A DNA stretch of 64,000 nt from Macrostomum lignano (GCA_002269645.1 NIVC01002520.1:62001-126000), one strand, 5' to 3'. Shown: positions 521-51,625, counted from the stretch's first letter. Program-made: numbers and translations. The notes: a model not told the origin generated them from the sequence alone.

Positions 521-1778
521 CGTCGCCGCTGCCTGCCAGCTTTGTGCTCCAACTGGACACGCCGCTCCCAGCTGAGGAGGACTTCTGCACCAGCCCAGTC
601 ACCACGGAGGACGTTGTGCTGTTCGCTCGAAAAACAACAGGCGGCAAGGCGCGATCGGCCCCGACGAAGTTCCGGTCGAAGCACTGCAGCTCCGCTGCGT
701 GGCCTCCCAGGTCACAGGCGTCGTGAACCGCGTGCTCGCCGGCGCCCCTGCGCCCACCGAGTGAACCGTCGCGCACATCGTGCCGATCCGGAAGAAGGCA
801 GGGACAACGCGGAAAGAAGACCACCGCGAAATCTCACTGATTTCCTGCACCTCGAAGCTCTTTAACCGGCTGCTGCTCGATCGTATGCAGTCGGTGCAGG
901 ACCCATACCTGCGGTACGAGCAGAACGGATTCCGGCCGCCAAGCTGGAACACAGACAGATCCTCAAACTCCGTCGTGTCATCGAGGAGGCGCACAACTGC
1001 CAGTATACGCTGATCATTGTCTTCGCTGACTTTGCGACGACTTTCGAAAGGCGTTTGACTCTGTGTTGAGAGCCGCGCTTCCCTTCGTCCTCGACCCTAT
1101 CGGGTCCCGCAGCAGCTAATCGACGCTGTCATGTCGCTGTATTGCGATACTCGAGCTGCTATGGTGACGGTGGACCGTCTGTCTGACCTGTTCGACACCT
1201 CATCAGAAGTTCTGCAGGGTGACACGCTGGCGCCGTTCCTCTTTGTGCTGCTGCTGGACTGGGTGCTTAGGACCGCACTCCCCTCGGCTGACGACGGCTT
1301 CCTGCTGCGTCCTGAATGTCCTCCAGTCCGAAGCGCTGCCCGACCGCGACAGGGCTCGGCTGTGGCAGGCGGTGGTCGAAACCGTCCTGCTATACATGTA
1401 CAACGCCGAGACGTGGACGTGGACTATGCTGGAGCGGCAGTTGGACTCGGCGCACTCAGGGCTACTCCGTGTGGCCAGCTTTCGAGCTGACAAGAGCGTC
1501 GGGACCGAGGCCCTGTACGATCGGGCCTAGCTGCAGCGGCCGTCCATCAAACCTGTGTTATGGAGCTACTGCCTCCAACCTGTGTTCAGGACGTTCTGAT
1601 GCTCACCTTGCAGGGCCCGTTCCGGTGGGTGATTCCTATGCGATGCTGAGGCACCCGAGACTACCAACGGGGCGGACTTCGTCCGATCTCAGGCTCTGAC
1701 GCGCCATCTGACGCGCCCTGCTCTCATAGTGACCTTGTATGCGGGGCTGCGTACTTGTTGTTGTTGTTGTTGTTGTTG
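520..1778 (+). mobile_element. 5'-truncated, frameshifted RTE-like LINE with internal deletion and (TTG)8 tail
   Basis: RT motifs in shifting frames: GKA-GPDEVPVEAL, IVPIRKK...HREISLISCTSKLFNRLLLDR...YEQNGFR, FADF..KAFDSV, VLQGDTLAPFLFVLLLDWVLR, AVVETVLLY..NAETWT. The YADD segment is missing. Ends in (TTG)8 at 1755-1778. Confidence 0.8.
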
Positions 1779-1983
1779 ACATGACCAAATTCAATTAACT
1801 GTACACTGTTCTGGCCGTGTTCCATGTACATGTGAAATTAAATCGCTGGGGCCAGCCAGCCAGGTTTTCACGTCTGCACATGTAAACTGTACATGACGCT
1901 GACAGACAGGCGAATGCATGAACTTAAGCGACAAATATCAACTAGCAGTCGCGTGAACGTCTTCATGCATGTACTGCCTGTAC

Positions 1984-2907
1984 CCCCTACAGCAAATCCG
2001 ACGTCAATGGCAAATTATTTGCTTTTATATATGTACATCAATGAAAATCGACGTTATACCGTCCGCTGAACGGCGGTGTAATTGTTAAAGTATGTACACA
2101 TCTGTCATCGATGTCGGATTAGTTTGCTGTACAGAGACCCCAGCGGTCTTCGGTTTCCAATAGTGCCTGTCTGACAAAGGAAAACAAACCAGAATTATCG
2201 CGGTCTGCCTGCGCGAACTTCGAGAAGCGCTTTTAGTGTCTCGCAGCCACTTGCTCGATATATCTATGTATTTTCTGCAGTTATTTTCACTCTTGTACTG
2301 TCATGGCAGAACTTGCAGTCCGAGGCCAGGAGAGCTATAGCGTCGCACGACGGCTTACTGTGCGCCGACTCCAAGATCAGCGGGGACTATTTAGCGAGTT
2401 ACAAAACCAGTACAGTCTGGCCGGCGTTCCTAACGTCTATCGAGTATACATGTATGACGTACTTTTACATGGCGTATCAGCTGACGTATGACGTCGTGGT
2501 TAAAGCCCATAACATTGTCATCGATGTCAATATAGTCGGGCGGCGTCGGATTGCTGTACGGGAAACGTGGTACGTACAGTGTATAATTATCGCTCAGCGA
2601 CCTCCAGGTATCATATGTACCGGTGAATGTACGGCGACTCATGCCCATTTGTACGTGCAGGATGAGTTGCTGTAAACGCTGGCAGACGTCTCGCGCCCAA
2701 GCCTAGCTATGTCTGAGGCAGTTTATTTTTTAAGACCTTTCTGGCAGCTTGCTATATATATTAGCGAGTTTTGACATGAGTTTTTACACTAAATTGATGG
2801 ATAACGACGTCATGCGTCGGCTGAACAACATGTAAAAGTACAAATTTGTCATCGACGTCGGTAACATCGGCCAGCGTCGCGTCGCTGACGTCGGATTGCT
2901 GTACGGG
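1984..2907. mobile_element. Non-autonomous TIR (MITE/EnSpm-like) element remnant
   Basis: Left end CCCCTACAGCAAATCCGACGTC is the near reverse complement of GACGTCGGATTGCTGTACGGG (ends 2907). A second right-end copy ends at 2562. Many internal GACGTC/CGTCGG motifs. No clear TSD. Confidence 0.5.
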
Positions 2908-4402
2908 AAAAAATGCAACAACCAAGCAACAGTTTTATGCAACTACATGTACAATGTGTGAGCTATCGAGCTCTTAGCTATAACTGAATTTACTTTGTGG
3001 CTGTATGTCTATGGTTACAAACTCGTTCCGTTTGATACAGACCACGACATCGAGAAGCATTAAGCTATGCGCGTAAGCGGTATAAAATAAAATGTTCAAA
3101 ACACCTCGCTTATAGAGCGAGCGAACGCTATAGAAAGTAGCAAGCCAAGGGCTGCTCATAAAAGTCGTCTTTGAATTTGTTATCATTACTCGACCAAAAA
3201 ACTTAACACAATGTATAATCACTGATCCTTGTTAAGACTCTAATCAACCGATGCATCGCAGTTTTATTTGCTGGTAGATCAAATTAGTTATAATCGCTTG
3301 AAATTTGATAAAGATTAAATAAACAACCATGCAATACGATGGCGAAAAAATTTGCATGCGAGAATCTGTAGTAGCCAGCATAAGCCTCTGGGGTGAAATC
3401 TAGTTGTTCGAAGCAAGCCATTACTATGTACACTTCGACTGCGTCTAATCAATTATTACATTAATTTAAAAGTTAATTTTGTAATTGTTTTCGATCAGCA
3501 ATGCTTGAACATTAGCGAGCTACAATAATAAGGCACATGCATGCATACCATTTAAGGCTAAGCTGCAGATCGATATAAGGGTTTATCCAGATATTATAAA
3601 CACATTATAAAGAACCAAGAGAATAACATCTGCATGCAGTTACCATATCCAGTGAGCCAGTTTGCATTGACAAGTAATGCTCAAAGGTATTGAAATTGCA
3701 TCAACTTAAGGACTTCTTAAGTAGACAGTTTGGAATGGAAACCTTGGAAAGCATTTAGTTTGCTGGTTTTGCTTTCCAGAAAAACTCAAGAGAGACATGT
3801 TATACTAAAGAACGAGCTTTTGATTGGCTTCCAATGAAAACTAAAACTGTCTTATTTTTGTGGAGAAATCAACCCGGAAAGATCCTACACATCTCCGTAG
3901 TGTACTTTTATTGCAAACTCAACCTAAAAATCGAATCGAAGTTTCCCGTCACACCTAAATTGTCCTTTTAGTTTGAAACTCCACTGGTGGTAAAATTTCG
4001 CTCGTAAAAATCGATCAAGATCGATCAAATCGATCGTTCACCGAAGGAAGTGAAATGGGACAATTTTTCATGAATAATCCTCACTATATAGTAAGCTATC
4101 TGCATCGCCATTTATTTGACGTAAAAGTGCGAATCTAATCTAAATATACACAAGTTTAAAAAGAAGCTGAGTATTTCTGAGACGCAAAAGGCGGAGAGAA
4201 TTAAATCGAGAAAAAAGATAAAGTACAGTTTGTGCACATTAATTAATCGCTCGTAAATCCGTTTGGAGCAATTTAATTTTGTCGAAAAGTTGAGCACACT
4301 AGTCTGTAGAGGAAAAAATCAGAATCAGAAAGAAGCAATTTATAAGTTGCATGTGATTGGCTGAGGAATACATGGTTATTAAATATAAAGTCGAGGCCAC
4401 TC

Positions 4403-7400
4403 TCACATCGATACCGAATTCATCGCTAGGGCTTTCTTCTCCAGTTCGGAAAATTCAGCATGCCCGGCTACCATTTCACTGCAAAGTGTAAAGGAGTTTG
4501 ATATATCAAACCAATTTCTTGCCGCAACTTTATCTGGTGCCAAGGCTTCAACACCAAACTTGTGATCATGAACAAACTTAAGTACTGTGGAAGCACGTAA
4601 AAATTTCTTAGAAATGAACTGGCCTGTAAAGAACGTATATTTGTGGTACCGCTGGGTGTATTCAGTGTGCTCTCTAGAGAACGAACATAGAGCTGAATGA
4701 GGTTTTGCCATAGACAAAATCCGTCGAGTAAAAGACGATCTCTTACGAGCATACAACAAATATCCGTTCCTTTCCGACTTTCAGCTCTTTTCTAAGAAAT
4801 TCGAGTGTAGCGTACTTCTACTTTAGTATTCTATATCTGGTGACCATCCGTGATGCGATACATAGTGTCGACGTGTGATGTTAATTTTTATTGATATTAC
4901 GCTCATAGTGTTTAGAGTCAACTCAGACCACAGATCCTATATAATAAAAGAATACTATAGAAGATGTCTCAATTCATTGTAGAAGAAAAGTGATCACTTT
5001 TTATATTCAGCTGACACATTCAGTCTTTTTAGGATTCAATGTTTCAGTGTTATTACTGTTTTTTTATGAAACTTAATTACTTTCCAGCTATTTATGTCTA
5101 ACTGAAGTCTAGGGAATCGGAACATTCATAAAATAAGTGTACGCTGGATTTGTAACTCTTTGTAACCAAATTTGAATTCGCACATCAGTTCGATTAAAGA
5201 TCGAAAATAGTAATGAAAAAAAACTATAGATTCAGTCTTGATGATTTAGCAAATAAAGTCATGTGCGTGCGCAAATGTAATTCATACATGTACGTGTGCG
5301 TATTCACTGATAGCTATATATGAGAGTTTTAATTCAGAGAATTTGCGATAATAAACATAAAGTGAACGATTGAAGTGAGCTTTTAATACATAGTTGGTTT
5401 TGTCATAAACAACACCTTTTGTAACACGATATAAATGTGTAAAAGCGTGCTTAAATGGCTAGTTATTGCGTATTGGCTGGAGTCATTTAATGCACGAGAA
5501 ATATATATCGAAATATATATTGAATCCTATAATTCACAGTTAAAATCCTGAAGGTAAATAAAGATAGGTTGGGCCATAGACAGCACCGTGAATTTCTGAC
5601 TGTCACCGTCAAGCGTGACAGTTCTTTTCATTTCAAATTTCAATCATTTCTTTTCTTGTCATTTCATTAAGATTAATTTTCATTTTAATCTTATAAGCCG
5701 CTCTTAATGCTTAGGAAAGTTATAAATTAACTGTGACTGGTGATCCTGTTTGTGAATTTATTAAGCAAATTTTTTTACCCAAAAATTACATGTATATAGG
5801 CCTAAATTACAGGCACACAAATGGCTACTGCTGCGGTCACAGACTCGACCGCAAGCTGTTTCCCTCTCAGCATCAGCAGCTGCTGTCTCCACTCCTGGTA
5901 AACTCCTTCATCAAGCCAATGTAGGACCAGGCGAAAGTGGCTGACGGAAAGTATGAACAAAACAAAAATGATGCAGTCATAACTATAGGAAAAAAACTGA
6001 AAAGTTAAAATTTAACTACGGTACAGTGCGTTGAAGCAATTCTAACCAAAAATAAAGTAGCTGGAAGATTTCTAAAAACTAAGGCAAGAAAAACATGAAT
6101 TTTGCTTTACTCTGTGCAGAAACAACTGGTGCGTGTATTTGGTTGCATCCAAAAACATGGTTTGAGAGCTCGCAAAACAAACTCGCGTGTTGTGATTCTG
6201 ATAAGTGCTGGTGCACTAATCTGCAGTTAGTTACTGCAGTTAAATTCACTGCTCTATCTTTGGAGCTAAAAATAAAAAAGAGATATTGATTAATAAAATT
6301 AATCTGAATTTCAAAATCAACAAGACAAGTCTGAATTAAAAATGTGAAACGCAAAATGAACGCACGATCTTCAGTGACTAGCTAGAGTGCTGCGTGATTG
6401 GGCATTGAGGAATGTGTAAGGAACTCAAGTTGATCGTCTTTCATACGCTGCAAAACAATTTTTTTAATTTGTAAGAAATAGATAATTGTAGCTCTTTTAA
6501 CTCAGGATTCAGAAGTCTTTCATATTATGAGCACTGCGATTCCTGAGCCACAAAAAAATACTTTCTAAGCATACTAGCTATATTTAGATTTTTTCTGAAA
6601 TATTTGAGATCTATGGAAAGTAAAGGTACATCATAAACCCGAAAAATCACAACTCCGAAAGGATTTCCTATCATAACCCCGAAAACAAAAATAGCGTTGG
6701 ACATTGCTAACACTTTTGAAGTTATGCTAATTCGGGTTTATGATGGAAAGCGCTTTCGGAAGATTTTTATGATGCTCCCGACACCTTTTAGTGAGAGAGT
6801 TCGGCGCAGATTGTACCGCTTAATCACGAAGAACCAGCTTAATCGTATTTTATAAGGTGAGGAATTGCGGGTAATATGTTTTGTTTATTTCGTCAGAGTA
6901 AAAAAGCATTTTTTTAAGTTTGATTGGTGATAATAATTATAAGCTGAATACAAGGTGGTTAGGACATTTTTCTCTTTGAATAGACTTGTTGAAGCTTTTT
7001 CAAAATTGCAGGAATCATTCGAGCAACCGTACTGACAAGGTACAACCCATTTCGAGTGGGATATGGTTAATTTTTTGTTATAATTTAAACAAGGATAAAA
7101 GTGTAGGATTTGGCAAAGGTGAGTTTTAATTGTTTGTCGTTGGATAGTAGACTAGCGATATACAGTACAGGGATGAGTGCATGCAGAAGTTGCTTACTGC
7201 TCCAAATAACAATGTTTACACAGTAAATGCTATATCGATCTAATCTATCTTCAGGAAATTATACCAGAAAGGAGAGTAAGTCATAAACTGAATTTCAATA
7301 ACACAAAAAGGAATAGAATTCGGACTATATTACTACACAATCTCTTGTAACAATCAAGAACATTCTACTACTTCTACTGGGGAGAGATCTCTATATGTAC

Positions 7401-10400: not shown

Positions 10401-12938
10401 AATGTTTCGCCACCCCTACCTTTTTGTAATTTTGTTTTGTAAAAACATATCAATCAACCTCGATCAAATTCAATTACTCTGGAGTGTTCATACTTGCACA
10501 GTCGTAGCGTGTGACTATAGTGTAGTACGCTTAATCTCACTGTCCTACCATCTCACTCCCACTGAATCTAAAATGGACACTAGGCCAACCATCTCACTTC
10601 CACTGAATCTAAAATGGACACTGTGCCAACCACCTCACTGCCACTGAATCTAAAATGGACACTGGGCCAACCACCTCACTGCCACTGAATCTAAAATGGA
10701 CACTGGGCCAACCACCTCACTTCCACTGAATCTAAAATGGACGCTGGGCCAACCACCTCACTCCCACTGAATCTAAAATGTACACTGGGCCAACCACCTC
10801 ACTGCCACTGAATCTAAAATGGACACTGGGCCAACCACCTCACTGCCACTGAATCTGCAATGAACATTTGGTCAAGCACCTTTCTCCCGCTGAATCTAAA
10901 ATTTACACTGAAACAAGCAACTCATCCCCACTCAACCATTTCCTTGAATGTACGCTGGGCTTGAACTGCGCAATTTACAAACTAAGCCAACCTCCAAAAT
11001 TTTAATAAAATCCACTTTTAGGTGGATGTAAATAAAAAAAGTGATTTTCTAAGACAGCCTAAAACTTACCTCGAGTCCTTCCAGAAACTCTTCTCGCGTC
11101 ACCGACATGCTTCGATCTTTGTCAAAGGTGTTAAAAAAATCGATCATCTTCATACCGCGTTTCTCAACAAAGTTTCTCAGCTTCATCATTGGATGCACTT
11201 TGGCCTTCTCGCGATGCGGCACCTTGACACCGACTTCCACCTTAAGCTCAGGCATTGTCTCCAGGAGTTGATAGTGCAGATCCTTGAAGTCGTCGTTAAC
11301 CATGATGTCCTGCATTATATTGTTTTCATTAATCATCTTTATTTAACATGAAGCATACCAAGAACTATAGATAAAAAAGCTCGTATAATTTTAGACTACT
11401 TTTAGTAAGAGGACGCAAGCTCAGACCCGAACGTCTCAGACTCGAACCTACATGTATGAATTTAATACGGTCGTACCTATTAGTTATGGTGCAGCTAAGC
11501 ATTCGTGTCTCGCTCAAAAAGTTAAAGCGAAATTGGATTTATCTATTTAATTGCTACGAAGTTCCGAATAAAACACGGAATGTGCCGACGGTATAAAAAG
11601 AATAAACCTTCGTTTTAAGGGGGGTTTGAGACCTCTGGATCAAAACCTTAATTCGGCGACATCGTCCCACTACCAGAGGCTATAATCTAGCCATTTTGAT
11701 TACTTCTGAGCACATTCATACAGCTTGGTATTGTACGCAGACACGCGCTCGCACAGGGCTTAAAGTGCACTTATTTTATAATCACTATGTTATAGGAAGT
11801 CATATAAATAACAGTAATAATAATTGGCTACAACTGCCCCAATTGAGCCAGATGTGCAACCGACAGCTCAGCCGCAGCTATTACGCGGCGCATCTGAAGG
11901 CTGAGTACGGCTGTTCAGTCCAAGGACTGGGGGGGGGGGGTCACCACACACAGCCTCAATTACCCCAGCTAATGCTGGCACCCATTTTACAGCTGGGTAA
12001 ACTGAAACATGAGTTAAGTGTCTTGCTCAAGGACACAAGGACACACCCCGACCTTCAAATCGTGAGCCCGACGCTCTAACCACTAGGCTTCAACCTCCTA
12101 GGAAGTCAGCATGTAAACTCTCTGCGCCACCAGGGTTTGCCTTCATGGATGTGAATTGCATGATGGCATAAAAGACAATTCACCGGCACATTTACTTACG
12201 CAAGCCCCGATTCGAATTGACGTGGCTGAGCACAGATTTCATATCTCGGACACTTAATATCTCGGACACTTAATATCTCGGACACTCAATGTCTCGGAAA
12301 TTTCATATCTAGGACATTTCATATCTCGGACACTTCATAACTCGGACACTTCATATCTCCGAAATTTCATATTCATTTGTATAGAATGCAGGTGATACCG
12401 CAAATTGTTCAGAAATCGCATGTGACTTTAATTGCACAGACTGTTTGCCCCAATTTAGCTGGCATCGCCGAAATATGTTGAAAACGTTTTTTAACCTAAT
12501 TGTTACGAAGGAATACCGCAGTACGAGACAGCAAGCTTAGCTTGGATTTGTGAAGGTTGAAACAGTAGTTCTCTAAATACGAGCGTACCACCCCTATAGC
12601 TACTCAGCAGTATGCTTCTCTCTTTTAATGGCCCGCCTCTCAATTGATATTCTCTCTTCTCAACAGCCGACTGTGAATAGCCACTCGTGCGAGCTTCTCT
12701 CCAAGTTGCAGCATAATTCAAACTATGAAGACTCGTTTCTCAGTTGACTGGTTGCAACGATTCAACACAGCAGTTGCTGGCTACGTACTACAGGCATTGG
12801 GTTGAATAGATTCTTGAGACAGCCACCCGGGGCAACAAAAGCAACCATGCAGCTGTATATGGCGCTCTAAAAAGAATTATACTGAGTAACAGAAGAAGTG
12901 GCAGCCTGAGAGATGAAGAATCACAATAAGACAGAGCC

Positions 12939-12986
<48 letters not shown>

Positions 12987-15900
12987 CCGGTGCAGATTTT
13001 ACAATGCACCTGAAGCACGAAAGCATTCTCTCAACAAATTGCACAGTCGAGCAGCGATAGAGAATGGGTTTTAGACACAATAGATTTGTCTAAAGCTCGA
13101 AAAAATGGTAGCTTTTATCTGCCTGATTTTTCGCCAGTCGAGAAGGGACCGCGAGTTGGGGAGGGGTTAAAAGGGCTGCTTTAGCTACTCAGCATGCGTT
13201 CGTGCCGCCGACACGTGGGGAAGCCTATTCTTATAGAGTTGAATAGCCGGCCCTCGGAGCGTCTGAGCCACAGAGCCAGAGACAGAGGGCAGAGTGAGCA
13301 AGCCATCTTTTATAAAGAGTCGCATTTCTAACAGAAGCGGTACAGAGCAAAGCTGCTACCGCAATTTAGAAGATGGATCGTTCGAAGCGATCAGCCCAGG
13401 AGGCTGGACGGCGTGGTCGGGTTATCCTGACCAGCGACCCGCTGCTGCGGGCCTTCTATGAGAACAATGTGGAGCGCATGGGCGCCATCATTCGCGAGGA
13501 CCCAGCCGAGCTAGAACGCTTGCTAGACCAGGTGCATCCGTTGGCCTGTCTGGCAGCTAAGGAAGACCGAGATGATGTACTGGGGCTGGTGAACTCACTC
13601 GGTGGTAGGCTCGATCTGCGCAATGCCGAACAGATGACGCCGTTGCATTTGGCCGTGATGCACGGCTGTATGAAGGCTACTAATTTTCTCACCTACCTAA
13701 AGAGTAGCGACCTGAACGAGCCGTATCCGAATGGTGACTACCTACTGCACAGGGCGTGCGTCACTGGTCAGCCCGAGCTGGTGCTGCAGCTCATGCGAGT
13801 TGGCGCCGATCCCAATAAGACAAATGCTCAGGGCCTGTTGCCGCTGCACAAAGCCTGCGAGGAGGAAAGCGTCGCCATGGCAGCCGCTTTGCTGCCTAAG
13901 ACCGAGAACGTGAACGTGGCCGGGCAGCAGGGTCGAACTGCGCTGCATATTGCGGCTGCCAACCAGTCGCTTGCCCTCATCAAGCTGCTGTTGGCCTACA
14001 ATGCCGACATTGACAAATACGACCGCAACAAGGAGTCGCCAATGGACATCATCATCCAAATGGGCAACAAGAACATACTGGTTGGTCTTGCCAACTTCCT
14101 TGATCGTTCAGTCACGGGAAGCTTCCTCTCGTTCAAAGAGCTGGACGATAACGCCGAGTTTTCAAGTGTCCTTCGCTTCATCGAAGCCATAGACAACGAA
14201 ATCACGCATCCGACAGCGGCTAAGAAGTTGGAGGTGCCCGAAGAAGAGGCCTCAAGAATTATCGGCCGAATCGCGACCGAGGAGAAGACGGATTTTATGG
14301 AGTTTCGCTCAATGCTCAAGACAATCGCCTATTGTGGTCTCTCGCAGAGGATTATTGATCACAAGATTGTTGACAAACTTGCCGTTGCCGTCTGCAAGCA
14401 AGTCCTATTTCGTGAGGATGCCGAAATGCTGCGATTAATTGTCTACAACACCGGATTGTGGCCCGCCATCCGCTCCGCTCTGGAAGAGGATGTGTTCATA
14501 CTGTATGAGACCTGCCAAGAAATCGGCTCGACCGGCATGGTTGGCCTCATTAAGCACGAAACCTTCGACACGGAGGACGAGATGAACATTGAAGATTTTT
14601 GTCGCTTTGTCGCTCAGGTATCCAATCTGCCGGCGTTGGACATGAGCAGAGAAAAGGAACGGGACGAGTTTCTAAAGGACCCGCTGCAGTCACTGACTCT
14701 CTGGTCGATTCTGACTGGCCGCTTTGATCTTACAGAAGATCTGCTGAAAACCGAACAATTCGACATTATCCCAATGGGCTTAATGTGTGCGGGCATTCTG
14801 CGCAACATCCGCTTCCGACCGGAGATTCCGTCGCCAACAAAGAAAATCATGGAAAACGTTGCTGACAAATGCGAGAGCGTTGCTGTGAAACTACTGCGAA
14901 GCATCACCGAGTACGACACATCCGATAACAAAGTGGTCAGCATCCAGTACATGCGCTGCCCGTTGCATCCCTACAGCAACAAATCTGCTATTGATCTGGC
15001 TGCATCTGGTCAATCGGAATCGTTCATCACTATGCCGAGTGTACAAAGCGCCCTCGACATGGAGTGGTACGACCGCCTGTACAAGCTGCCCTGGCTGCTG
15101 CGCCAGTTTCTTGTGCTGATGGCCCTCATTCCCTACAACCCAATTGTGGCGTTCATTCTCATCCGGCTAGAGAAGAAGAAGGCAGAGGAGCGCCGGTCTA
15201 AAGCCGCCACCGAAGAGGAGGAAGAAGATAAAGAAGTGAATTTGCTAATATTTATAATGCTTGTGAAGTTCCTGATCTATTTAACGCGTATTTTTCGATA
15301 TTTTCCACGAAATTACGACTCGTAATTCATTTTCTTTCCAGGTAATCGGCGTTACCCTGGGTTCTGAAGCGCGCAAGCGCAATACAAAGGACAAAAAGGA
15401 CGAGGACAGAGTCGGTGCAACCGACCGGCGCAAGAAGATGCGCCGTCACCTAACTATGCAGCAGTCGGAGGAGGCCCTGACAGATGACAAGCCTGACCAA
15501 CAGCAGGCGGACATGGAGTTGGCGCGTATGGACTCACGCTCCACGCTACTCTCCACGGACAGAAAGAGCCGTGGTAGACCCGGACGCTCCGACGAAGAGC
15601 CAACAAAGGCCGAGAACATTTTTAAGCAGTCTTTTGACGCTATGAACAAACTGTACAACACGCCGTGCGTTAAGTTCCGCTTTCACGTCATGTCTCACAT
15701 CATCTTCGTCCTTATCTTCTCAATTGTGATGGTCGCCCAGTTTCGCTACCATCCAACGCCGCTAGAGATAATCGTTTATCTGTTTCTGTGCGGCTTTCTG
15801 TTAGAAGAGTTGCGCGAAGCTAACATGGCTTTAAACTCGGGAACAATGTCGGAATACATATCGGACGGTTGGAACATCATCGATAACACAGCCATCCTAT

Positions 15901-18900
15901 TGGGCCTTGCTGGATTTGTGCTACGTTTGTTCCGTATCAACACAAAGATGACGACAAGTGATCTTTACACTTTCACTGACAGCTTCTGGTGGTGCGCTCA
16001 CCTCACTTTGGCTCTCAGCTGCCTGCTGTTCTGGATTCGATTGCTCTACATCAGTACGGTGCTTGAGAGCCTGGGCCCGAAGCTGAAGATGATCTATATC
16101 ATGATCATTCGCGATTTCCTACCGTTTCTCATCATCTTGTCCATCGTGATGTTCGGCTTCGGCATAGCTATTCACGGCCTACTGTTCCCTAACGGCTACG
16201 CCAAAGACAACAAGGTTCCATTGAGCGGCGCCGAGATCTTCCAGCGGATGTTCAAGATCACCTTCTACGCCATGGTTGGTGACTACTCGCTGGATCTGAT
16301 CCAAGGCAGCGATTGCAACAATGAGACAACTACTAAACCGTGCCCCCATCCGCTCGGAAAGATTGTGGTGCTCAACATGATCATGGTGATTTACATCGTT
16401 ATCACTAGCGTCCTGCTGCTAAACCTCATCATCTCGCTGTTCAGCAAAACAGTCGAAGAGGTCGACAGTAAATCGTTCGCCCTGTGGCAGTTCGAGCGTT
16501 ACAACTTGGTGCACGAGTTCCACATCCGGTTTCCGCTGCCACCGCCGTTGAACATCCTTGGAAGCGTCTTCAAACGAATCAGCGGTATCTTCCTGCGGTT
16601 CAAAGCCCGCGGCAGGCAGGACAGCCAGAAGTTGACTCGCGGCTTCGAGAAGGCCTCCGTGTTCCACTTCCTGCTCTATCAGGCGTTTAGTCTCCGTAGG
16701 AAGCGCAAATACCTTGAGGGCGACGTGGAGATCGAAGACATTGACAAGATCATCGGCGAGATCAACACCAACGTGAAGCTGATGAACACCGAGATCGGCA
16801 ACCTCACCAGGAAGGTGGCCGAGCAGCGAGATGAGTGCGAAGAAGATGAAGATTGATTGGCTGTTTCGAATCAAACTGAGGACCATAATAATGGATTATT
16901 CAGATTTTGATGCTTCAGTAGCTACAGTTAAAACTCTCACATCAGAAAAAAGTCTCAAAACTTATATTCGATTTTTTACTTTGTAATAATTTTTCGCAAA
17001 CTTTTACTATACTCATTTTGTTTAGTTTATATTAACAACTCGTATAGTTAATTAAACTGACTCGTACTTGTACGCCACGTCGTAGCCCTATTGCTGTTGA
17101 ACTCTGCATATTCATGAGATGATATTTTTAGACGTAATTATTTAAACAAAATTCTACAATTGCATCATCCTGTTTTAAGCTGAAATTGGCCAATAAATTA
17201 AGCTCATTAGAAGCTATGGAATTAGTAGGATCGCAGCGTTTGTACATGAATTACTAATTTTTGACAACAATTTAATAATATCGTACGAGCGTAATTCACT
17301 TGCTCACCTGAAAGTCTAGCAGACAGATCTGAGACTGTGGATTCTTGGAAACGGCAGTTAGAATTGCATAACAACCGGAAGTTTGCATCGGATTTCGGCC
17401 CATCTGACGAAAAGTGATATCGGTTTTGTCAATGCTAGATTAATTTTTTTATTTTCCTTACATTTTTACCAAAATCTTTACAAATTGTCACTCTGTTTGC
17501 ACTCTGTCACTCCTCAACCTACTCAATTCTCTGTCTGTCACTCACCAACCTGCTCACATCTCTGTCTGTCACTCACTAACATGCTCACATCTCTGTCTGT
17601 CACTCACTAACCTGCTCACATCTCTGTCTGTCACTCACTAACATGCTCACATCTCTGTCTGTCACTCACTAACCTGCTCACATCTCTGTCTGTCACTCAC
17701 TAACATGCTCACATCTCTGTCTGTCACTCACCAACCTGCTCACATCTCTGTCTGTCACTCACTGTCTGTCACTCACCAACCTGCTCACATCTCTGTCTAT
17801 CACTCACTAACATGCTCACATCTCTGTCTGTCACTCACCAACCTGCTCACATCTCTGTCTGTCACTCACTAACATGCTCACATCTCTGTCTGTCACTCAC
17901 CAACCTGCTCACAACTCTGTCTGTCACTCATCAAACTGCTTAAAACTATCACTTCAAATACGAGTTTGCCACCCAGAACTCACCCGCAGAACCTTGAGCG
18001 TACTATTTAATGTAAGTCCCTTTCCAAACAGTACGGCGCCTTCAGTAGTGATTCGATTGTTCCTGAAAGCAAATCAAATGTTTGAACCAGCTGACTAGAT
18101 CTAACAACTTCTTGACGGAGTTCATGCACAATATATTGCATTCAACAAACATTTTCTGTGCAGAAATCAAGATTATTTTGTTCAACAAATAAAAAACTAG
18201 ACAAAACAATTTAGCTCATACTTTAACTAAATTCAACGATCTCATATGCCTACTGAGAGTAGAAAAGTAAGTAAAATTATATGTATTATGCTTGTACACG
18301 CGTGTACAAGATTCATTTTGGGAGGCCGTCCGAGCAACTGAGGATCTAGGAGGCTGGCTGCCCAGCAACTGAGGATCTGGGAGGCTGGCTGCCCAGCAAC
18401 TGAGGATCTGGGAGGCTGACCCAGCAACTGAGGATCTGGGAGGCTGGCCCAGCAACTGACACTCTTGGAGGCTGGCCCAGCAACTGACACTCTGGGAGGC
18501 TGGCCCAGCAACTGACACTCTGGGAGGCTGGCCCAGCAACTGACACTCTGGGAGGCTGGCCGAGCAACTGACACTCTGGGAGGCTGGCCCAGCAACTGAC
18601 ACTCTGGGAGGCTGGCCCAGCAACTGAGGATCCGGAAGGCTGGCCTAGCAACTGAGGATCTTGGAGGCTGGCTCAGCAACTGAGGATCCCGGAGGCTGGC
18701 CAGGCAACTGACAACAATTGAGGATCTGGAAGGAACTCAAGCTAAGTCTGGTAGAAAGCACTCACGACAGGTTGAGCTCCTCCAGACAGGTATTGACTTT
18801 GATGGCTTTGCTAAGCTCCTGAAGGCCGTAGGTGGGTCCGAAGCCGTTGAAACTCAGGTCCAGCCCTTTCAGCCCGTTGTTTGCCTGAACAGTAGGAAGT

Positions 18901-21900
18901 TGTTCAAGTTAATTACACTCATCACAATGAAACATGAAGTTTGCTATTTGCCCCTCGCTACTCAACACTTAATTAGTAGTTGATGCCAAGCCAACTCACC
19001 GCAAGCCCTTCGGCGATGCCCTTGGCGCCTTTGGCTCGGATGTGATTCCAGCTGAGATTGAGCTCGAGCAGGCTGCTGTTCTCCATCAGAGCTTTGCCGA
19101 TGGTGAAGCCGCCCAACTCGGCGAAGTTGTTCTGCGACAGATCCAGCCGGTGCAGAGTGGCCGTGTTCTGCCGGAGTGGGCCGCGTTTGGGATTCGGGCA
19201 TATTTTGCAATTTGGGATCTTCGGGTTTGGGATTCAATGATGACGTGGGATTTGAGAGGGGTTTGGGATTTGGAATTCGGGAAGGGATTAGGACTTGGGA
19301 TTTGTGGAGGGGTTCGGATTTGAGATTTGGGAAGGGTTCGGGATTTGGGGAGGGTTTGGGATTTGAGAAGATTTTGGGATTTGAGGAGGGTTTCAGATTC
19401 GAGAAAGGTCTGGGATGTCAAGAGGGCTTGGGATTTAAGTAGGGTTTGATATTTGGGAAGGTTTTGAGATTTGGGAAGCGTTTGGGATTTGGGAAGCGTT
19501 TGGGATTTGGGAAGCGTTTGGGATTTGGAAGGATTTGAGATTCAGGAAGAGTTTGGGATTCAATGATGATTTGGGGTTTGGGATTTGGGAAGGATTTGGG
19601 ATTCAGGAAGAGTTTGGGATTTGGAAGGATTTGGGATTCAGGAAGAGTTTGAGATTTGGAAGGATTTGGGATTAAGGAAGAGTTTGGGATTTGGAAGGAT
19701 TTGGGATTCAGGAAGAGTTTGGGATTTGGGAGGATTTGGGATTCAGGAAGAGTTTGGGATTTGGGAGGATTTTGGATTTGGAAGGATTTGGGATTCAGGA
19801 AGAGTTTGGGATTTAAAAGGATTTGGGATTCAGGAAGAGTTTAGGATTCAGGAAGAGTTTGGGATTTGGAAGGATTTGGGATTCAGGAAGAGTTTGGGAT
19901 TTGGAAGGATTTGGGATTCAGGAAGAGTTTGGGATTCAGGAAGAGTTTGGGATTTGGAAGGATTTGGGATTCAGGAAGAGTTTGGGATTCAATGATGATT
20001 TGGGGTTTGGGATTTGGGAAGGGTACCCGAAGAAAGTATCAGAAGGAGTACAGATTTTAATGGCTTGAATCTTAAAGAATCTTAATAGGATTGAGATCGG
20101 AATGAAGGATAACTAGGGATATTCAAAGATTGGGGATTTAAAAGCTATCAGCCATCCCAAGCCTCTCACGGTGATCAGATCCGCAAAGAACTGGCTGCTC
20201 CTGTCATCAAATTCGTTGCCGCGCAGGCAGACGCTGGTCACCTGCGTGTTGGCCATGAGAACCTCGCACAGCTGCTTGGCAACATCCAGGCCCATTTTAT
20301 TATCAGCCAGATTCAGCTCAGTGATGAAGCAGTTCTCGCGCAGCATGTGCACCACCTGCAGGCCACCGGCCGCTCCAAGCCAGTTATCGCCGAGGTCCAG
20401 TTTAGTCACGGTGGAGTTCGAGGCCAGCGAAGCGCACAGCGGCTTGATGCCGCCGGTGCCCAGGCCGTGGTGCCGCATGTCGAGCTCCGAGTCGGCGATG
20501 TGGCGCAGATAGTAGCTGGCCGGGACCACGCCAGCCGATTTGCACAGGTCGATGTACAGAGTGCGGCCTGAGTGGTCGTAGGCCGCGTGCTCGGCTGTGG
20601 ATTACGATTTAAGGTTCGGGAGTTCCTAAGATAAAGAGGATTTGTGAGTTAGAAAGACAGAGAGGAGAATGACAAGGAGCGAGGGAGTAGTAGAATGAGT
20701 AGAGAGTGATGAAACTATCTCTTCATCCAGGCACTTTTCGTACAAAGTTTATAGCGACAGCGACAGCAAAATCAACAGTTACTCAGCAAAGTAATCTGCA
20801 CCAGAATAGTAATAATAATGATACGAGCTAAAAACTAATTACACCTGCCCCAATTGGGCCAGATGTGCAACCGACAGCTCAGCCGCAGCTATTGCGCGGC
20901 GCATCTGAAGGCTGCGTACGGCTGTTCAGTCCAAGGACTGGAGGGTCGCCACACACAGCCTCAATTACCCCAGCTAATGCTGGTACCCATTTTACCTATG
21001 TTTCTTGCTCAAGGACACAAATTTTTCCACTGGGAATTGGGAATCGAACTCCCGACCTTTGAGTCCCGAGTTCGACGCTTTAACCACTGGGCTGCAACCC
21101 CAGCCTAACAAACACAGCCTGTCAACGAGTTACCAGCCGCTCTGAGCCAGATCTGTAAAACTGGGCATTTTTTGCATTTTTCGCTCCTCATCGGTTGAGA
21201 AGTTTTTGTCTATCAGATACGGAAATTTCTAGAGATAAAGTGAAACACAGCCAAAGTTATAAGCAATCAAAGCCAAAGAGATCTTTCTGGATGACATGAT
21301 TATAAGGAGAGAAGCCGAGAGAGGGTAGTGAGGAGAATGGAAGAGGTAAGATGGGCTGGAGAGAGTAAAAAAGGTAAACTTTGAAATAATTCAGAATACA
21401 CAGTGGGAGAAACCTTGTACAAGAAAAATACATTTTTGAACATAAGAATAATATTGTAAAAACTTCGACAAAAATAAGTAAGGATCGTCGTCATCGTGTT
21501 TAATAATCGAAAATATTAAATACGCAAAGAATTCTACCAAATCGATTGAAATACTATAGCGATTATTGAGTCTTTATCCAATATAAAATAATTTTTAAAC
21601 ATGAAGGTGCATTGTGCAAAATAGTTTCGATGTGACTTTAGCAGAATGCAAAATAAATTTGTGCATGGTGAAGGTGTGCATTACAAGTATATTTAAGTCA
21701 AATGTTGATAAATTCAATAATAAAAGCAGGAGAAAACATGGCACCTTTTAAGATCATTTGTTGTCGCTTAATTGAATAGGAAAAATCTATTTGAAAATAC
21801 TTACGAACAACTCGGACTTGGGCTAGAAATTTTATGTTTGCTTTTCTTTTAGATTATCAAATTGACATCATAGGGGAATATTGGATTTTAATTTGTTTCA

Positions 21901-29854: not shown

Positions 29855-30690
29855 GGCCCAATTCGAGTGTCAGGGGTGTCAGGGGGACTGGCGCCAGCTC
29901 GGGTGTCAGAGGGACTGGCGCCAGCTCGGGTGTCAAGGGGGACTGGCGGCAATTCCGGTGTCAAGGAGGACTGGCGGCAATTTGGGTGTCAGGGGGACTG
30001 GCGCCAATTCGGGTGTCAAGGGGGACTGGCGCCAATTCGGGTGTCAAGAGGAATGGCGCCAATTCGGTTGTTAGGGGGGACTGGCGCCAATTCCGGTGTC
30101 AGGGAGGACTGGCGCCAATTTGGGTGTCAGGAAGGACTGGCGCCAATTCGGGTGTTAGGGGGGACTGGCACCAATTCGGTTGTTAGGGGGGACTGGCGCC
30201 AACTCGGGTGTCAGAAGGACTGGCGCCAATTTGGGTGTCATGGGGGACTGGCACCAATTCGGGTGTTAGGGGGGACTGGCGCCAACTCGGGTGTCAGAAG
30301 GAATGGCGCCAATTCCGGTGTCAAGGGGGACTGGCGCCAATTCCGGTGTCAAGGGGGACTGGCGCCAATTCGGGTGTCAGGGAGGACTGGCGCCAATTCG
30401 GGTGTCAGGAAGGACTGGCGCCAATTCGGGTGTCAGGGGGGACTGGCGCCAATTCGGGTGTTAGGGGGGACTGGCCCCAATTCGGCTGTCAGAAGGAATG
30501 GCGCCAATTCGGGTGTCAGGAGGACTGGCGCCAATTCGGGTGTCAGGGGGGACTGGCGCCAATTCGGGTGTCAGAGGGGACTGGCGCCAATTTGGATGTC
30601 AGGGGGGACTGGCGCCAATTCGGGTGTCAGGGGGGACTGGCGCCAATTCGGGTGTCAGGGGGACTGGCGCCAATTCCAGTGTCAGGAATA
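29855..30690. repeat. About 28-bp GC-rich minisatellite, about 30 copies
   Basis: GGACTGGCGCCAATTCGGGTGTCAGGGG, period 28 (30552, 30580, 30608). Confidence 0.95.
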
Positions 30691-31161
30691 GGCGTCAGGT
30701 CCTTTCGCCTTTAGCTCCGGAAGTGGCCGGGATTATTTCCCAATTTCTAGCTAATAATGCTCAACAATATAACCCAAACACTATTATATTACCCTTCAGT
30801 CCAAGTCACAAGGCAGCTGTAATTGTTGAGTAACTAATCGAAAAGTACATGCGGCAACAAAAAGGAACAAAGCAAATAAAGAGCCCAAAGAGCAAAGGAA
30901 GAAATGCAATATTGTTGGGAGTGAGACCTGGAGCTTAAGGCAGAGAGAGCCCTGCTTAGCCGTGTAAGGGAAAGGATGAAGGCGAACGCGCTATGCAAAC
31001 AGGTCCTCGGGCCTCCAGAGCCTATTAAGTCAACCAAAAAGTCATATTTCCAAAACCATAAGGTATTGGTCATTGACATGGGAGTGGACGCTTGCTGCAC
31101 CGTCAAGGCTTAATTCCACTTCTTCCCCCAACCGCCCCCCCACAGAATCAGCCCAGCTAGC

Positions 31162-33095: not shown

Positions 33096-33167
33096 TTCCC
33101 TGACCGGGAGTCGAACCCGGGCCGCCTGGGTGAGAGCCAGGAATCCTAACCGCTAGACCATCAGGGA
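33096..33167 (-). tRNA. tRNA-Glu (CTC)
   Basis: Minus: TCCCTGATGGTCTAGCGGTTAGGATTCCTGGCTCTCACCCAGGCGGCCCGGGTTCGACTCCCGGTCAGGGAA. Paired acceptor stem, CCTGG/CCAGG anticodon stem with CTC, GTTCGAC T-loop, and a T6 terminator at 33085-33090. Confidence 0.97.
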
Positions 33168-33479
33168 CTTATTGAACTGCTGGCTCTAACATTAGACTTG
33201 TTGCTATCTGGGAAAATCCTCTGCTTTTGGGGGCATCGTGTTAGCAGTGAAATATGCATGTCCCACTCCGAGCTTCCATTGATAAGAATTGTTCCTGTGA
33301 AGTTGACTTGCTGCCAAGCGATATTAGCAGTACTGTTCTCGCATTTCTGATAGCTTGCCTTTAAGATTTGAGTTCTGAGCCTGAGGTTCCAAGCATAAAT
33401 AGTTCGTTTGTTTATACTTGAGAATGCCAAAATAGCTGACTCTCTCCTATTATAGCTCGCACTCGTATCATTGAATTCA

Positions 33480-34335
33480 AAGCAACTTGAGTTCCAAGCA
33501 ACTTGAGTTCCAAGCAACTTGAGTTCCAAGCAACTTGAGTTCCAAGCAACTTGAGTTCCAAGCAACTTGAGTTCCAAGCAACTTGAGTTCCAAGCAACTT
33601 GAGTTCCAAGCAACTTGAGTTCCAAGCAACTTGAGTTCCAAGCAACTTGAGTTCCAAGCAACTTGAGTTCCAAGCAACTTGAGTTCCAAGCAACTTGAGT
33701 TCCAAGCAACTTGAGTTCCAAGCAACTTGAGTTCCAAGCAACTTGAGTTCCAAGCAACTTGAGTTCCAAGCAACTTGAGTTCCAAGCAACTTGAGTTCCA
33801 AGCAACTTGAGTTCCAAGCAACTTGAGTTCCAAGCAACTTGAGTTCCAAGCAACTTGAGTTCCAAGCAACTTGAGTTCCAAGCAACTTGAGTTCCAAGCA
33901 ACTTGAGTTCCAAGCAACTTGAGTTCCAAGCAACTTGAGTTCCAAGCAACTTGAGTTCCAAGCAACTTGAGTTCCAAGCAACTTGAGTTCCAAGCAACTT
34001 GAGTTCCAAGCAACTTGAGTTCCAAGCAACTTGAGTTCCAAGCAACTTGAGTTCCAAGCAACTTGAGTTCCAAGCAACTTGAGTTCCAAGCAACTTGAGT
34101 TCCAAGCAACTTGAGTTCCAAGCAACTTGAGTTCCAAGCAACTTGAGTTCCAAGCAACTTGAGTTCCAAGCAACTTGAGTTCCAAGCAACTTGAGTTCCA
34201 AGCAACTTGAGTTCCAAGCAACTTGAGTTCCAAGCAACTTGAGTTCCAATCAACTTGAGTTCCAAGCAACTTGAGTTCCAAGCAACTTGAGTTCCAAGCA
34301 ACTTGAGTTCCAAGCAACTTGCGTTCCAAGCAGCT
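33480..34335. repeat. Near-perfect 16-bp tandem array (GAGTTCCAAGCAACTT), about 53 copies
   Basis: Directly visible. I saw only two variant units (near 34249 and 34322). Confidence 0.98.
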
Positions 34336-34820
34336 TAAGTTTTAGCTGTCATGTCTATCTATAGCTACTTGTCTAAACGCATCTTTCCCCAAGTTCACTA
34401 CGAGTAGACATTTGAAAATTTTAAGAAGACATTCGGGTTGCTTTGGATTTAGTACGAAGCTTGATCTTAGCACTGCACATAGCCTTGTCACTATTGTATT
34501 TAAAAAAACAAATTCTGACCTAATTGTCATAACTTTAGTTGATGGACTGTTCACTCCAGTTGCAGCATAAATTTACGTGCATCTGCTACAAGAATACATG
34601 CATGCACGATGTATCAACAACAACAAGAAGAATAATTAAAAACACTTTTGGTGTTTTCATGATGAACACATGCTGTGGATGAATTCTGAATCCACTCAAA
34701 TAATTCTATTCGAGTTAAAACAGAGAAGTACAAGTCCTGTGCTGTATGACTAACCTATTCTAATGGAGTACAAAAACTACTTATTGTGAACTTCATTCGA
34801 TTTTAAATTTTGATTTCAAG

Positions 34821-36535
<1,715 letters not shown>

Positions 36536-49184: not shown

Positions 49185-49936
49185 TGTTGTGTCATCTAGT
49201 GAGTTGCTACCCTCCTATGTGTGTCACCTAGTGAGTTGCTACCCTCCTATGTGTGACATCTAGTGAGTTTCTACCCTCCTCTGTGTCATCTAGTGAGTTT
49301 CTACTCTCCTCTGTGTGTCATCTAGTGAGTTGCTACCCTCCTCTGTGTGTCATATAGTGATTTTGTACCCTCCTCTGTGTCATCTAGTGAGTTTCTACTC
49401 TCCTCTGTGTGTCATCTAGTGAGTTGCTACCCTCCTCTATGTAATCTAGTGAGTTTCTACCCTCCTCTGTGTGTCATCTAGTGAGTTTCTACTCTCCTCT
49501 GTGTGTCATCTAGTGAGTTTCTACCCTCCTCTATGTCATCTAGTGAGTTTCTACCCTCCTCTGTGTCATCTAGTGAGTTGCTACCCTCCTCTATGTAATC
49601 TAGTGAGTTTCTACCCTCCTCTGTGTGTCATCTAGTGAGTTTCTACCCTCCTCTGTGTGTCATCTAGTGAGTTTCTACCCTCCTCTGTGTGACATCTAGT
49701 GAGTTTCTACCCTCCTCTGTGTCATCTAGTGAGTTTCTACCCTCCTCTGTGTGTCATCTAGTGAGTTTCTACTCTCCTCTGTGTGTCATCTAGTGAGTTG
49801 CTACCCTCCTCTATGTCATCTAGTGAGTTTCTACCCTCCTCTGTGTGTCATCTAGTGAGTTGCTACCCTCCTCTGTGTGTCATCTAGTGAGTTGCTACCC
49901 TCCTCTGTGTGTCATCTAGTGAGTTTCTACCCTCCT
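49185..49936. repeat. 30/32-bp minisatellite, about 23 copies
   Basis: GT(GT)GTCATCTAGTGAGTT(T/G)CTAC(C/T)CTCCTCT units. Confidence 0.95.
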
Positions 49937-50712: not shown

Positions 50713-50761
50713 CGTGACCCTGCAAAAAGCCAATCGCCAGCTGTTCCTCCAAAGCCGATCC

Positions 50762-51625
50762 ATGGTGGTGCTACTCCGGTTAATTCAACGCTGCAGCGGC
50801 GGCGGCAGCAGCGGCGGTCGCAGCGGCGACACGGACGCCGACACAGATTTATACGGCCCGGCGGAGGCTGTCCTTTTTGCCATTGGCCAGCCGTTTCGCG
50901 TGTTGCAGACTCTGGCATTGGCTTCTGGGGGAGATTTTTCTGTTGCGGTGTCCTCAGCTCGCCCCGCCTTGTCTGCCCTGGTGCTGACCGGCCTGCCTGT
51001 GGGTCTCCTCTGCGACTGCCTGCTCACAGCCGGCCTGCAGCTCTCCTTGCAGCGGCCGCCCATTCCTACGCGATCTGCTTCGAGAAACCAGCAGCAGCAG
51101 CAGCAACAGCAGCAGCAATCGTTCTTCTCTTTGAACACGGCTCGTCTTCTAGGCTTCAATGCCTACGCCTGTTTGGTGACTCAACCGCTGCGGGTGCTGC
51201 AGCTGCGCCAGCTGCTCAGCCTGACCGCCGGCTCCGCCTCGGTGTCCGTCCTAACCGCCGCTCGCGCCGTCTACGCCGAGAACGGCTGGCGCGGCTTCTT
51301 TGCCGGCTTTGCCGGTCGGGCGCTTCGGCACTGCTCCCTGGTGCTGGCCTTCCTGGCGGCTGCCCGCCTGCGGCGCTGGCTGCTGGCGCGTCGCGCCGTG
51401 GCGCCGCCGAAGCCGCTGGCTGGCGCGCCTAGTAGAGTGGTTTTTCCTTCGGCGGTGTACTGCCTGGCTGGCCAGCTGCTGCACCCGCTGGCGGCCTGGG
51501 AGGTGGCCACAGTGGCCGCGGCGGCGGCCGCCGCTGTACCTTCTGCCGTGTCGCTGTTCCCCCTGTCGTATTCTTGCGCCCCGATGCAATCGGCTGTGCG
51601 TATTTTAGCCGAGATGAGGCGCTAG
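50762..51625 (+). CDS. Divergent mitochondrial-carrier-fold protein (SLC25; MTCH-like), 287 aa ORF
   Basis: GC-rich ORF with three degenerate carrier signatures (QPFRVLQ, QPLRVLQLR, HPLAAWEV) and a clear ARAVYAENGWRGFFAGFAGRAL (EG..GF[FY]xG) motif, plus a poly-Q stretch. The 3' end could have further exons I cannot identify. Confidence 0.7.
   Translation: MVVLLRLIQRCSGGGSSGGRSGDTDADTDLYGPAEAVLFAIGQPFRVLQTLALASGGDFSVAVSSARPALSALVLTGLPVGLLCDCLLTAGLQLSLQRPPIPTRSASRNQQQQQQQQQQSFFSLNTARLLGFNAYACLVTQPLRVLQLRQLLSLTAGSASVSVLTAARAVYAENGWRGFFAGFAGRALRHCSLVLAFLAAARLRRWLLARRAVAPPKPLAGAPSRVVFPSAVYCLAGQLLHPLAAWEVATVAAAAAAAVPSAVSLFPLSYSCAPMQSAVRILAEMRR

Follow-up and report, generated by a model that had tools for sequence, protein, structure and literature searches.

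The 64,000-nucleotide (nt) stretch of Macrostomum lignano DNA analysed here (GCA_002269645.1 NIVC01002520.1:62001-126000), hereafter the window, contains at 13373..16856 (+) an intact two-exon gene in which N-terminal ankyrin repeats are joined to the body of a TRP channel. This channel body is TRPM-like by sequence and predicted fold, and not TRPN, TRPC or TRPA; in the model, it is only MHR1/2 whose place the ankyrin repeats take, and the MHR3/4-like region is kept. We think it likely that the gene falls in the flatworm 'TRPM-like' group whose type member is TRPM_MCLZ, the target of meclonazepam in schistosomes. The architecture itself is known and has been in the literature since 2023, so the picture of the TRP family is unchanged. 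What is new is the presence of the ankyrin-TRPM-like family in a free-living, early-branching macrostomorph, together with its expansion in M. lignano to at least 11 clusters and the divergence of the ligand pocket. Since Macrostomorpha branch early, the ankyrin-TRPM-like architecture predates parasitism.

Gene structure and domain architecture

Two open reading frames (ORFs) are listed on the (+) strand, 13373..15325 (650 aa, amino acids) and 15438..16856 (472 aa), which an earlier reading of the sequence by itself (the sequence-only reading) had joined at 15235/15342. This junction holds. Exon 1 runs from the ATG to 15235 in exactly 621 codons, the donor GT is found at 15236-37 and the acceptor AG at 15340-41, preceded by the pyrimidine tract ttttctttccag, and the junction is in frame with the second ORF, which gives a spliced coding sequence of 3378 nt and 1125 aa. 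Unspliced read-through of the intron would stop at 15323-15325, and an in-frame stop lies two codons 5' of the ATG at 13373. The NCBI M. lignano protein BOX15_Mlig012389g1 (P0001, 1125 aa) differs from the spliced product only by C321G, so the deposited gene model has the same junction. A tblastn search detected no second copy of the gene within the 64-kb window.

It could be argued that this locus merely has a truncated TRPM gene beside an ankyrin gene, the chimaeric product being a gene-model artefact or a pseudogene. M. lignano annotations do include fused models, e.g., P0280 and P0281 (~2900-3000 aa, two channel units), and the window is rich in repeats and bears a retrotransposon. Nevertheless, we consider this explanation highly improbable. 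The ankyrin repeats, the MHR3/4-like region and the pre-S1 segment are all encoded by the single uninterrupted 621-codon exon 1, which makes the fusion independent of the intron, and the sole intron falls in the disordered loop between pre-S1 and S1, in frame and with canonical splice sites. Moreover, the entire 1125-aa frame is open with the family-conserved residues intact, the same architecture occurs again in M. lignano paralogues and in neodermatan orthologues, and the S. mansoni counterpart was cloned as cDNA (PMC10788528).

The domain calls for this intact gene come from a Pfam scan of the 1125-aa product. Five Ank families (Ank, Ank_2, Ank_3, Ank_4 and Ank_5) match over aa ~60-236, with E values from 4e-23 (Ank_2) to 2e-11, followed by the PF25508 'TRPM2-like domain' at aa 419-552 (28.3 bits, cut-off 27) and by Ion_trans at aa 739-998. 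SLOG (LSDAT_euk, LSDAT_prok), Nudix and kinase domains gave no Pfam match in the product, and, as a positive control, the same library detects LSDAT_euk in the canonical M. lignano TRPM P0140. In an AlphaFold2 monomer model obtained from a 40-sequence alignment (mean predicted local distance difference test score, pLDDT, 79.8; predicted TM-score, pTM, 0.72), ankyrin-type helix pairs occupy aa ~54-244 (pLDDT ~90) and an all-helical region occupies aa 250-620. The helices of the model add up to about six repeats plus a possible N-cap. Several proposals of the sequence-only reading are borne out in this way: about 5-7 ankyrin repeats, an N-terminus that has them and no canonical SLOG MHR1/2, an MHR4-like segment (PF25508 is above its cut-off and TRPM alignments begin at aa ~430), and the absence of NUDT9H and of a kinase tail.

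The same reading had placed a ~150-aa linker behind the repeats and stated that these replace MHR1-3, and here it has to be corrected. When aa 236-621 were modelled alone (pLDDT 85.4), all 50 listed Foldseek matches were TRPM structures, aligned over 274-430 columns (query 386 aa); their query-normalised TM-scores were 0.36-0.50. The match of this model to TRPM structures means that the supposed linker is a folded MHR3-like helical domain, after which MHR4 follows. Further downstream, hydropathy places the hydrophobic pre-S1 segment at 579-597, the model has helices at 574-583 and 590-623, and the disordered loop between pre-S1 and S1 is not conserved across paralogues. The monomer model ends in three C-terminal helices in all, the last of which is a candidate tetramerisation coiled coil.

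Family assignment of the channel body

The ankyrin repeats raise the question of whether the protein is a member of one of the ankyrin-bearing TRP families (TRPN/NompC, TRPA, TRPC or TRPV), its TRPM-like motifs being superficial. When the full-length protein is compared with PDB sequences, NompC does rank first as a whole protein, with TRPM chains at ~103-135 bits, and both TRPN and TRPA appear among the full-length matches. However, these matches stem from the ankyrin repeats, to which NompC owes its top rank: the NompC transmembrane stretch gives 44.5 bits against the window protein, whereas a search with aa 714-1046 has nothing but TRPM among its best 60 PDB sequences (117-80 bits). The alignment with Nematostella TRPM2 (nvTRPM2, 6co7) extends over aa 429-1035 of the window protein, and a Foldseek search with the full model returns TRPM2, TRPM5, TRPM4, TRPM3 and TRPM7 as best structures over ~850-1000 columns. 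The TRPM MHR3/4-like fold of aa 236-621 and the PF25508 score also speak against membership of these families. In a neighbour-joining (NJ) tree of the S1-TRP region (148 sequences, 293 columns, 100 bootstraps; no named TRPS sequence in it), a long branch with bootstrap 100 divides the TRPM-like group from TRPN, the outgroup. We give membership of an ankyrin-bearing TRP family next to no probability; the TRPM-type transmembrane region that had been proposed from the sequence stands on the PDB matches, on Foldseek and on the split from TRPN in the tree.

The TRPM-like character of the body is also apparent when it is compared feature by feature with canonical TRPM channels (nvTRPM2 6co7, TRPM3, TRPM5, TRPM8), with which it shares the MHR3/4 fold, the pre-S1 hydrophobic helix, S1-S6, the Ca2+ site in S2/S3, the pore-loop Cys pair, the TRP box WxxxRY and the C-terminal helices. 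It differs from them in having six canonical ankyrin repeats instead of the MHR1/2 SLOG, in having no NUDT9H or kinase, and in a ~100-aa disordered insert between pre-S1 and S1. TRPN/NompC likewise has N-terminal ankyrin repeats followed by a six-transmembrane channel and a TRP helix, but its ankyrin matches span ~1,000 residues against ~190 in the window protein, and MHR3/4 is missing from NompC. TRPS (soromelastatin, of the C. elegans ced-11 type), a sister-type relative of TRPM, has a TRPM-like transmembrane core as well; yet it carries SLOG and Nudix and no detectable ankyrin repeats (PMC7306681), the reverse of the window protein. Both TRPM and TRPS are without ankyrin repeats according to Himmel et al. 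(PMC7306681).

Within the core, the six transmembrane helices that had been proposed are confirmed, together with a pore helix, by the hydropathy scan and the AlphaFold model. The latter places S1 at 729-752, S2 at 761-787, S3 at 797-820, S4 at 835-859, the S4-S5 linker and S5 at 866-902, the pore helix at 917-933, and S6 with the TRP helix at 958-1016. The motifs quoted in the sequence-only reading were all recovered, LLLNLIISLFS of S6 at 979, CNNETTTKPC at 946, WQFERY at 1003 and PLPPPLNIL at 1019. The filter, VGDY at 933-936, has the acidic G-E/D pattern, as do nvTRPM2 and the majority of the aligned TRPM-type sequences; acidic filters, as in TRPM3/6/7, go with divalent permeation. The voltage-sensor-like domain contains the Ca2+-site residues E777, E780, N799 and D802, besides R854/Y857 in S4. 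Three of these site residues (E777, N799 and D802) match the Ca2+ ligands of TRPM2/4/5/8, and position 780 is Glu and not Gln across the Macrostomum clade.

The pore loop had been read as a Cys pair enclosing an N-glycosylation sequon, and both elements are present. The pair C946/C955, which is probably comparable to the Cys pair of TRPM8, as the sequence-only reading had it, recurs in at least 90% of the 40 TRPM-type proteins that were aligned. The N948-E-T sequon, in contrast, is not conserved among the paralogues; it belongs to the window protein and was dropped as a family feature.

Flatworm relatives and TRPM_MCLZ

Since a search with the full-length protein was flooded by generic ankyrin proteins, it was rerun without the repeats and then exhaustively. 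The indexed search without repeats returned only M. lignano paralogues of the same Pfam content, and the exhaustive HMMER search with aa 246-1125 returned 1686 proteins at E <= 0.001. Its top ranks are again M. lignano paralogues, with 29-42% identity (P0131/P0314, P0124, P0121, P0125, P0126, P0127, P0129/P0123, P0002, P0122, P0130/P0300, P0141 and P0142); in total, the M. lignano paralogues of this architecture fall into at least 11 divergent groups, taken as clusters of <50% identity. The best matches outside Macrostomum come from Opisthorchis (P0128, P0284, P0285), Dicrocoelium (P0134), Fasciolopsis (P0297), Schistocephalus (P0135, P0293) and Protopolystoma (P0178, a monogenean member). The proteins of the first four of these genera outrank every SLOG-bearing TRPM in the exhaustive search. 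In the proteins of Opisthorchis, Dicrocoelium and Schistocephalus, Pfam detects both Ank and Ion_trans, and in the canonical P0140 it detects SLOG and the TRPM2-like domain; phmmer with the ankyrin region of the window protein missed the repeats of P0128 and P0135, which Pfam found. Among the best 150 matches, the ankyrin carriers are flatworm or unassigned sequences only. In the reverse direction, phmmer with the non-ankyrin parts of the neodermatan proteins ranks the M. lignano ankyrin clade before all SLOG-bearing TRPMs, and the window protein is one of the top matches. The stretch at aa ~340-430 is alignable only with ankyrin-clade proteins, and canonical TRPMs align only at aa ~430-600.

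A channel with this layout has been described in Schistosoma mansoni. TRPM_MCLZ (Smp_333650) has ankyrin modules at the N-terminus and no MHR1/2-SLOG, and its short C-terminus is without an enzyme domain; its gene has only three exons (PMC11731825 section 3.1). The protein is termed 'TRPM-like' (PMC12861061 Fig. 1 legend) and was formerly named TRPM7-like, which fits the database label 'TRPM7' under which P0297 of Fasciolopsis and P0293 of Schistocephalus are annotated. The S. mansoni channel was cloned and studied by patch clamp: in HEK293 cells, meclonazepam elicits an inward current and raises Ca2+, and the drug pocket, in the voltage-sensor-like domain, was located between S1-S4 and the TRP helix, with H827, H831, Y864, E868, R943, H946 and Y1117 as its residues (PMC10788528). 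The supplement of PMC12058154 lists planarian best matches of Smp_333650 that cover residues 35-1130, so the family is also present in triclads. For Macrostomum members, no mention was found in the literature.

The link between the retrieved sequences and this published channel comes from residue signatures. In the residue table, the Fasciolopsis and Dicrocoelium proteins have R-x-x-Y in S4 and Y-x-x-R-T in the TRP helix, and the cestode has R-x-x-F and Y-x-x-K-S at these places. Such residues are those of the published TRPM_MCLZ variation (Fh Y994, Tyr in Plagiorchiida, Eg F952, and the R1120K and T1121S mutants; PMC12861061, PMC10788528), and for this reason the neodermatan matches are taken to be TRPM_MCLZ orthologues. 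Moreover, the His-x3-His pair of S1 (H827/H831 in S. mansoni) is found in both the Macrostomum and the neodermatan ankyrin clades and is missing from the three tabulated SLOG-type or canonical TRPMs. No S. mansoni copy of TRPM_MCLZ was present among the retrieved proteins scanned for the published residue numbers. A Schistosoma rodhaini protein (P0137) was tried as TRPM_MCLZ and rejected: its numbering does not fit, it has no ankyrin repeats, and it groups with SLOG-type TRPMs.

The window protein and TRPM_MCLZ have in common N-terminal ankyrin repeats in the place of MHR1/2-SLOG, a retained MHR3/4-like region, TRPM-type S1-S6 with the TRP helix, a short C-terminus without NUDT9H or kinase, and few exons (two in the window gene, three in S. 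mansoni). To these are added the residues shared across the group, namely S1 His-x3-His, the S2 Glu, the S4 Arg, the TRP-helix Arg and 'PPP(L/F)N' after the TRP helix, and the fact that both sides are reciprocal best relatives at the clade level. Differences exist too. Overall identity with the TRPM_MCLZ orthologues is ~22-23%, the ankyrin block is shorter (aa 54-244 versus ~70-340), and the Ca2+-site Gln of TRPM_MCLZ is replaced by Glu (E780) throughout the Macrostomum clade. The Macrostomum filter is G-D/E-Y, a region in which the neodermatan sequences align poorly. In addition, M. lignano has its many paralogue groups where a single TRPM_MCLZ is described in S. mansoni, and an Opisthorchis model has two tandem bodies. 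In our opinion, clade-level orthology with TRPM_MCLZ is well supported by the several lines taken together, the tree alone being no proof. The sequence-only reading had inferred a domain-shuffled TRP subfamily, to be refuted if the architecture proved to be that of a named, widespread clade. By this criterion its claim to novelty fails: the layout is that of a named flatworm group, and the closest relatives outside Macrostomum are orthologues of its type member.

Several points weigh against this assignment. It is drawn from orthologues and residue signatures, Smp_333650 itself being known through its published description. Of nine pocket positions, five are kept with respect to Sm.TRPM_MCLZ (H736, H740, E777, R854 and R1017) and four differ, the Tyr, His, Tyr and Thr of the schistosome channel being replaced by F773, Y857, F1014 and F1018, respectively, so the ligand specificity is surely different; a Tyr in S4 corresponds to the low-sensitivity state in schistosomes (PMC10788528). 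The Macrostomum and neodermatan ankyrin clades are unjoined in the best NJ tree, and the bootstrap replicates unite them in 54% of cases if the fragment P0142 is included and in 31% if it is left out. Finally, channel activity is predicted for this gene by analogy, and any role of the ankyrin repeats is one that we infer.

Each of the two clades is well delimited in the NJ tree, at bootstrap 99 for Macrostomum and 88 for the neodermatans, and both are basal in the TRPM-like group, outside the other 120 sequences, including all 70 that bear SLOG. This position is what would be expected if the proteins formed an ancient separate TRP lineage with an ancestral ankyrin array, split off before SLOG joined the ancestor of TRPM and TRPS. 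MHR3/MHR4 have been reported with degenerate ankyrin repeats (Burroughs 2015, as quoted in PMC13143021), and the canonical repeats 5' of MHR3 could then be a retained part of the ancestral array. Such a lineage would be a surviving link between ankyrin-type TRPs and melastatins, and would overturn the loss of ankyrin repeats before the TRPM-TRPS split that Himmel et al. infer (PMC7306681), which itself speaks against it. Furthermore, the basal nodes have a bootstrap of only 21-42, attraction of the long flatworm branches to the outgroup is likely, and all nameable members are Platyhelminthes, so that losses in every other phylum would be needed. We regard an ancient lineage as unlikely, and, given the flatworm-only distribution, as less parsimonious than a domain swap inside TRPM in flatworms.

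TRPM_MCLZ is a validated anthelmintic target. M. lignano is free-living, easily cultured, transgenic and regenerating, and with its many divergent paralogues it makes a tractable system. We think that questions such as what these channels sense, how the ankyrin repeats are coupled to the TRPM body and which pocket residues set ligand specificity can be addressed in this animal.

Some further sequences of the family were observed in the course of the searches. P0133 is an uninterrupted 1072-aa ankyrin-TRPM-like ORF on a 6849-nt contig (L001) of the Logan run DRR639838, with the gene at 1298..4516; it groups with the neodermatan TRPM_MCLZ clade at bootstrap 73, and its source could be a planarian or another free-living flatworm. 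In Opisthorchis viverrini, P0128 (1906 aa) and P0284 (2059 aa) contain two complete channel bodies in tandem, the S1-TRP units of P0128 being located at 678-987 and 1356-1672. This is either an annotation fusion of neighbouring TRPM_MCLZ-like genes or a tandem duplication in the drug-target family. The M. lignano UniProt entries P0280 (2903 aa, named integrase-containing) and P0281 (3003 aa) comprise two ankyrin-TRPM-like units and are probably fused models across tandem paralogues plus a transposon; in that case, part of the family may be arranged in clusters.

Proposed mechanism and further features of the window

By analogy with its relatives, the product would be a subunit of a tetrameric, non-selective and probably Ca2+-permeable cation channel. 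A ligand or lipid in the cavity between S1-S4 and the TRP helix may gate it, as in Sm.TRPM_MCLZ, TRPM8 and TRPM2/4/5, with intracellular Ca2+ at E777/E780/N799/D802 as a putative co-agonist, and movement of the TRP helix would then open the gate at S6. Divalent ions may permeate, judging from the acidic filter (G934-D935), and a ligand profile different from that of Sm.TRPM_MCLZ is to be expected. The ankyrin repeats would be placed at the periphery of the cytosolic ring, where the nucleotide-binding SLOG normally sits; our guess is that they most likely act as a protein-interaction or tethering module, and not as a nucleotide sensor. The features of the gene are collected in Table 1.

Table 1. 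Features of the ankyrin-TRPM-like gene, in window coordinates
Feature	Position	Strand	Content or basis
Exon 1	13373..15235	+	aa 1-621: start codon, ankyrin repeats, MHR3/MHR4-like region, pre-S1 hydrophobic helix, start of loop
Ankyrin repeats, about six (aa 54-244)	13532..14104	+	Pfam Ank families; paired helices in AlphaFold model
MHR3-like helical domain (aa ~250-420)	14120..14632	+	Foldseek of the aa 236-621 model
MHR4-like domain (aa ~430-572)	14660..15088	+	PF25508; nvTRPM2 (6co7) alignment starting at aa 429
Pre-S1 hydrophobic helix (aa 575-607, FLVLMALIPYNPIVAFILI)	15095..15193	+	Hydropathy peak 2.35
Charged, predicted-disordered loop (aa 608-705)	15194..15593	+	Holds the intron; pLDDT <50 at aa 624-705
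Intron	15236..15341	+	106 nt, GT..AG, pyrimidine tract
Exon 2	15342..16856	+	aa 622-1125 and stop: rest of loop, S1-S6, pore, TRP helix, C-terminal helices
S1-S6 channel core (aa 729-990)	15663..16448	+	Ion_trans; PDB sequence matches; residue table
Pore-loop Cys pair C946/C955 around N948-E-T sequon	16314..16343	+	Motif scan
TRP helix and next motif (aa 995-1027: WQFERYNLVHEFHIRFPLPPPLNIL)	16461..16559	+	Motif scan, alignments
C-terminal helices (aa 1049-1079, 1085-1121)	16623..16841	+	AlphaFold secondary structure

An antisense ORF at 16419..16886 (155 aa), probably a chance one, overlaps the 3' end of the coding sequence. Elsewhere in the window, a long terminal repeat (LTR) retrotransposon of the BEL/Pao type occupies 55424..60885 (-) with two adjacent intact ORFs. 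The first one (1079 aa) has DUF1759 (gag-like), an aspartyl protease and RVT_1, and the other (738 aa) has Peptidase_A17 (Pao), an integrase zinc-binding domain and DUF5641; the element looks young or possibly active.

Minisatellite arrays with units of 16-94 bp lie densely in the window, at 10547..10910, 17503..17940, 18319..18711, 19316..20010, 29874..30686, 33471..34341, 40087..41394, 42981..44241, 49188..49936 and 51728..52990, one of them consisting of a 16-bp unit repeated 54 times with 99% identity. Long TCCTCTC-rich tracts with strong strand skew occur as well. Several long ORFs of the window, among them 29867..30691, 33161..34249 and 40045..41499, are within minisatellite coordinates and are probably repeat artefacts; of these three, the first and the last gave no Pfam match, and the second gave only a weak DUF3719.

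Two further ORFs have recognisable domains. The one at 34821..36068 (-), of 415 aa, matches Tubulin (E = 2e-49) and Tubulin_C (E = 1e-53), and since the profile match begins at position 30, its N-terminus may sit in another exon. The 303-aa ORF at 50714..51625 (+), which adjoins tandem repeats, has a weak single Mito_carr repeat (E = 2e-5), perhaps as a single exon belonging to a gene for a mitochondrial carrier.

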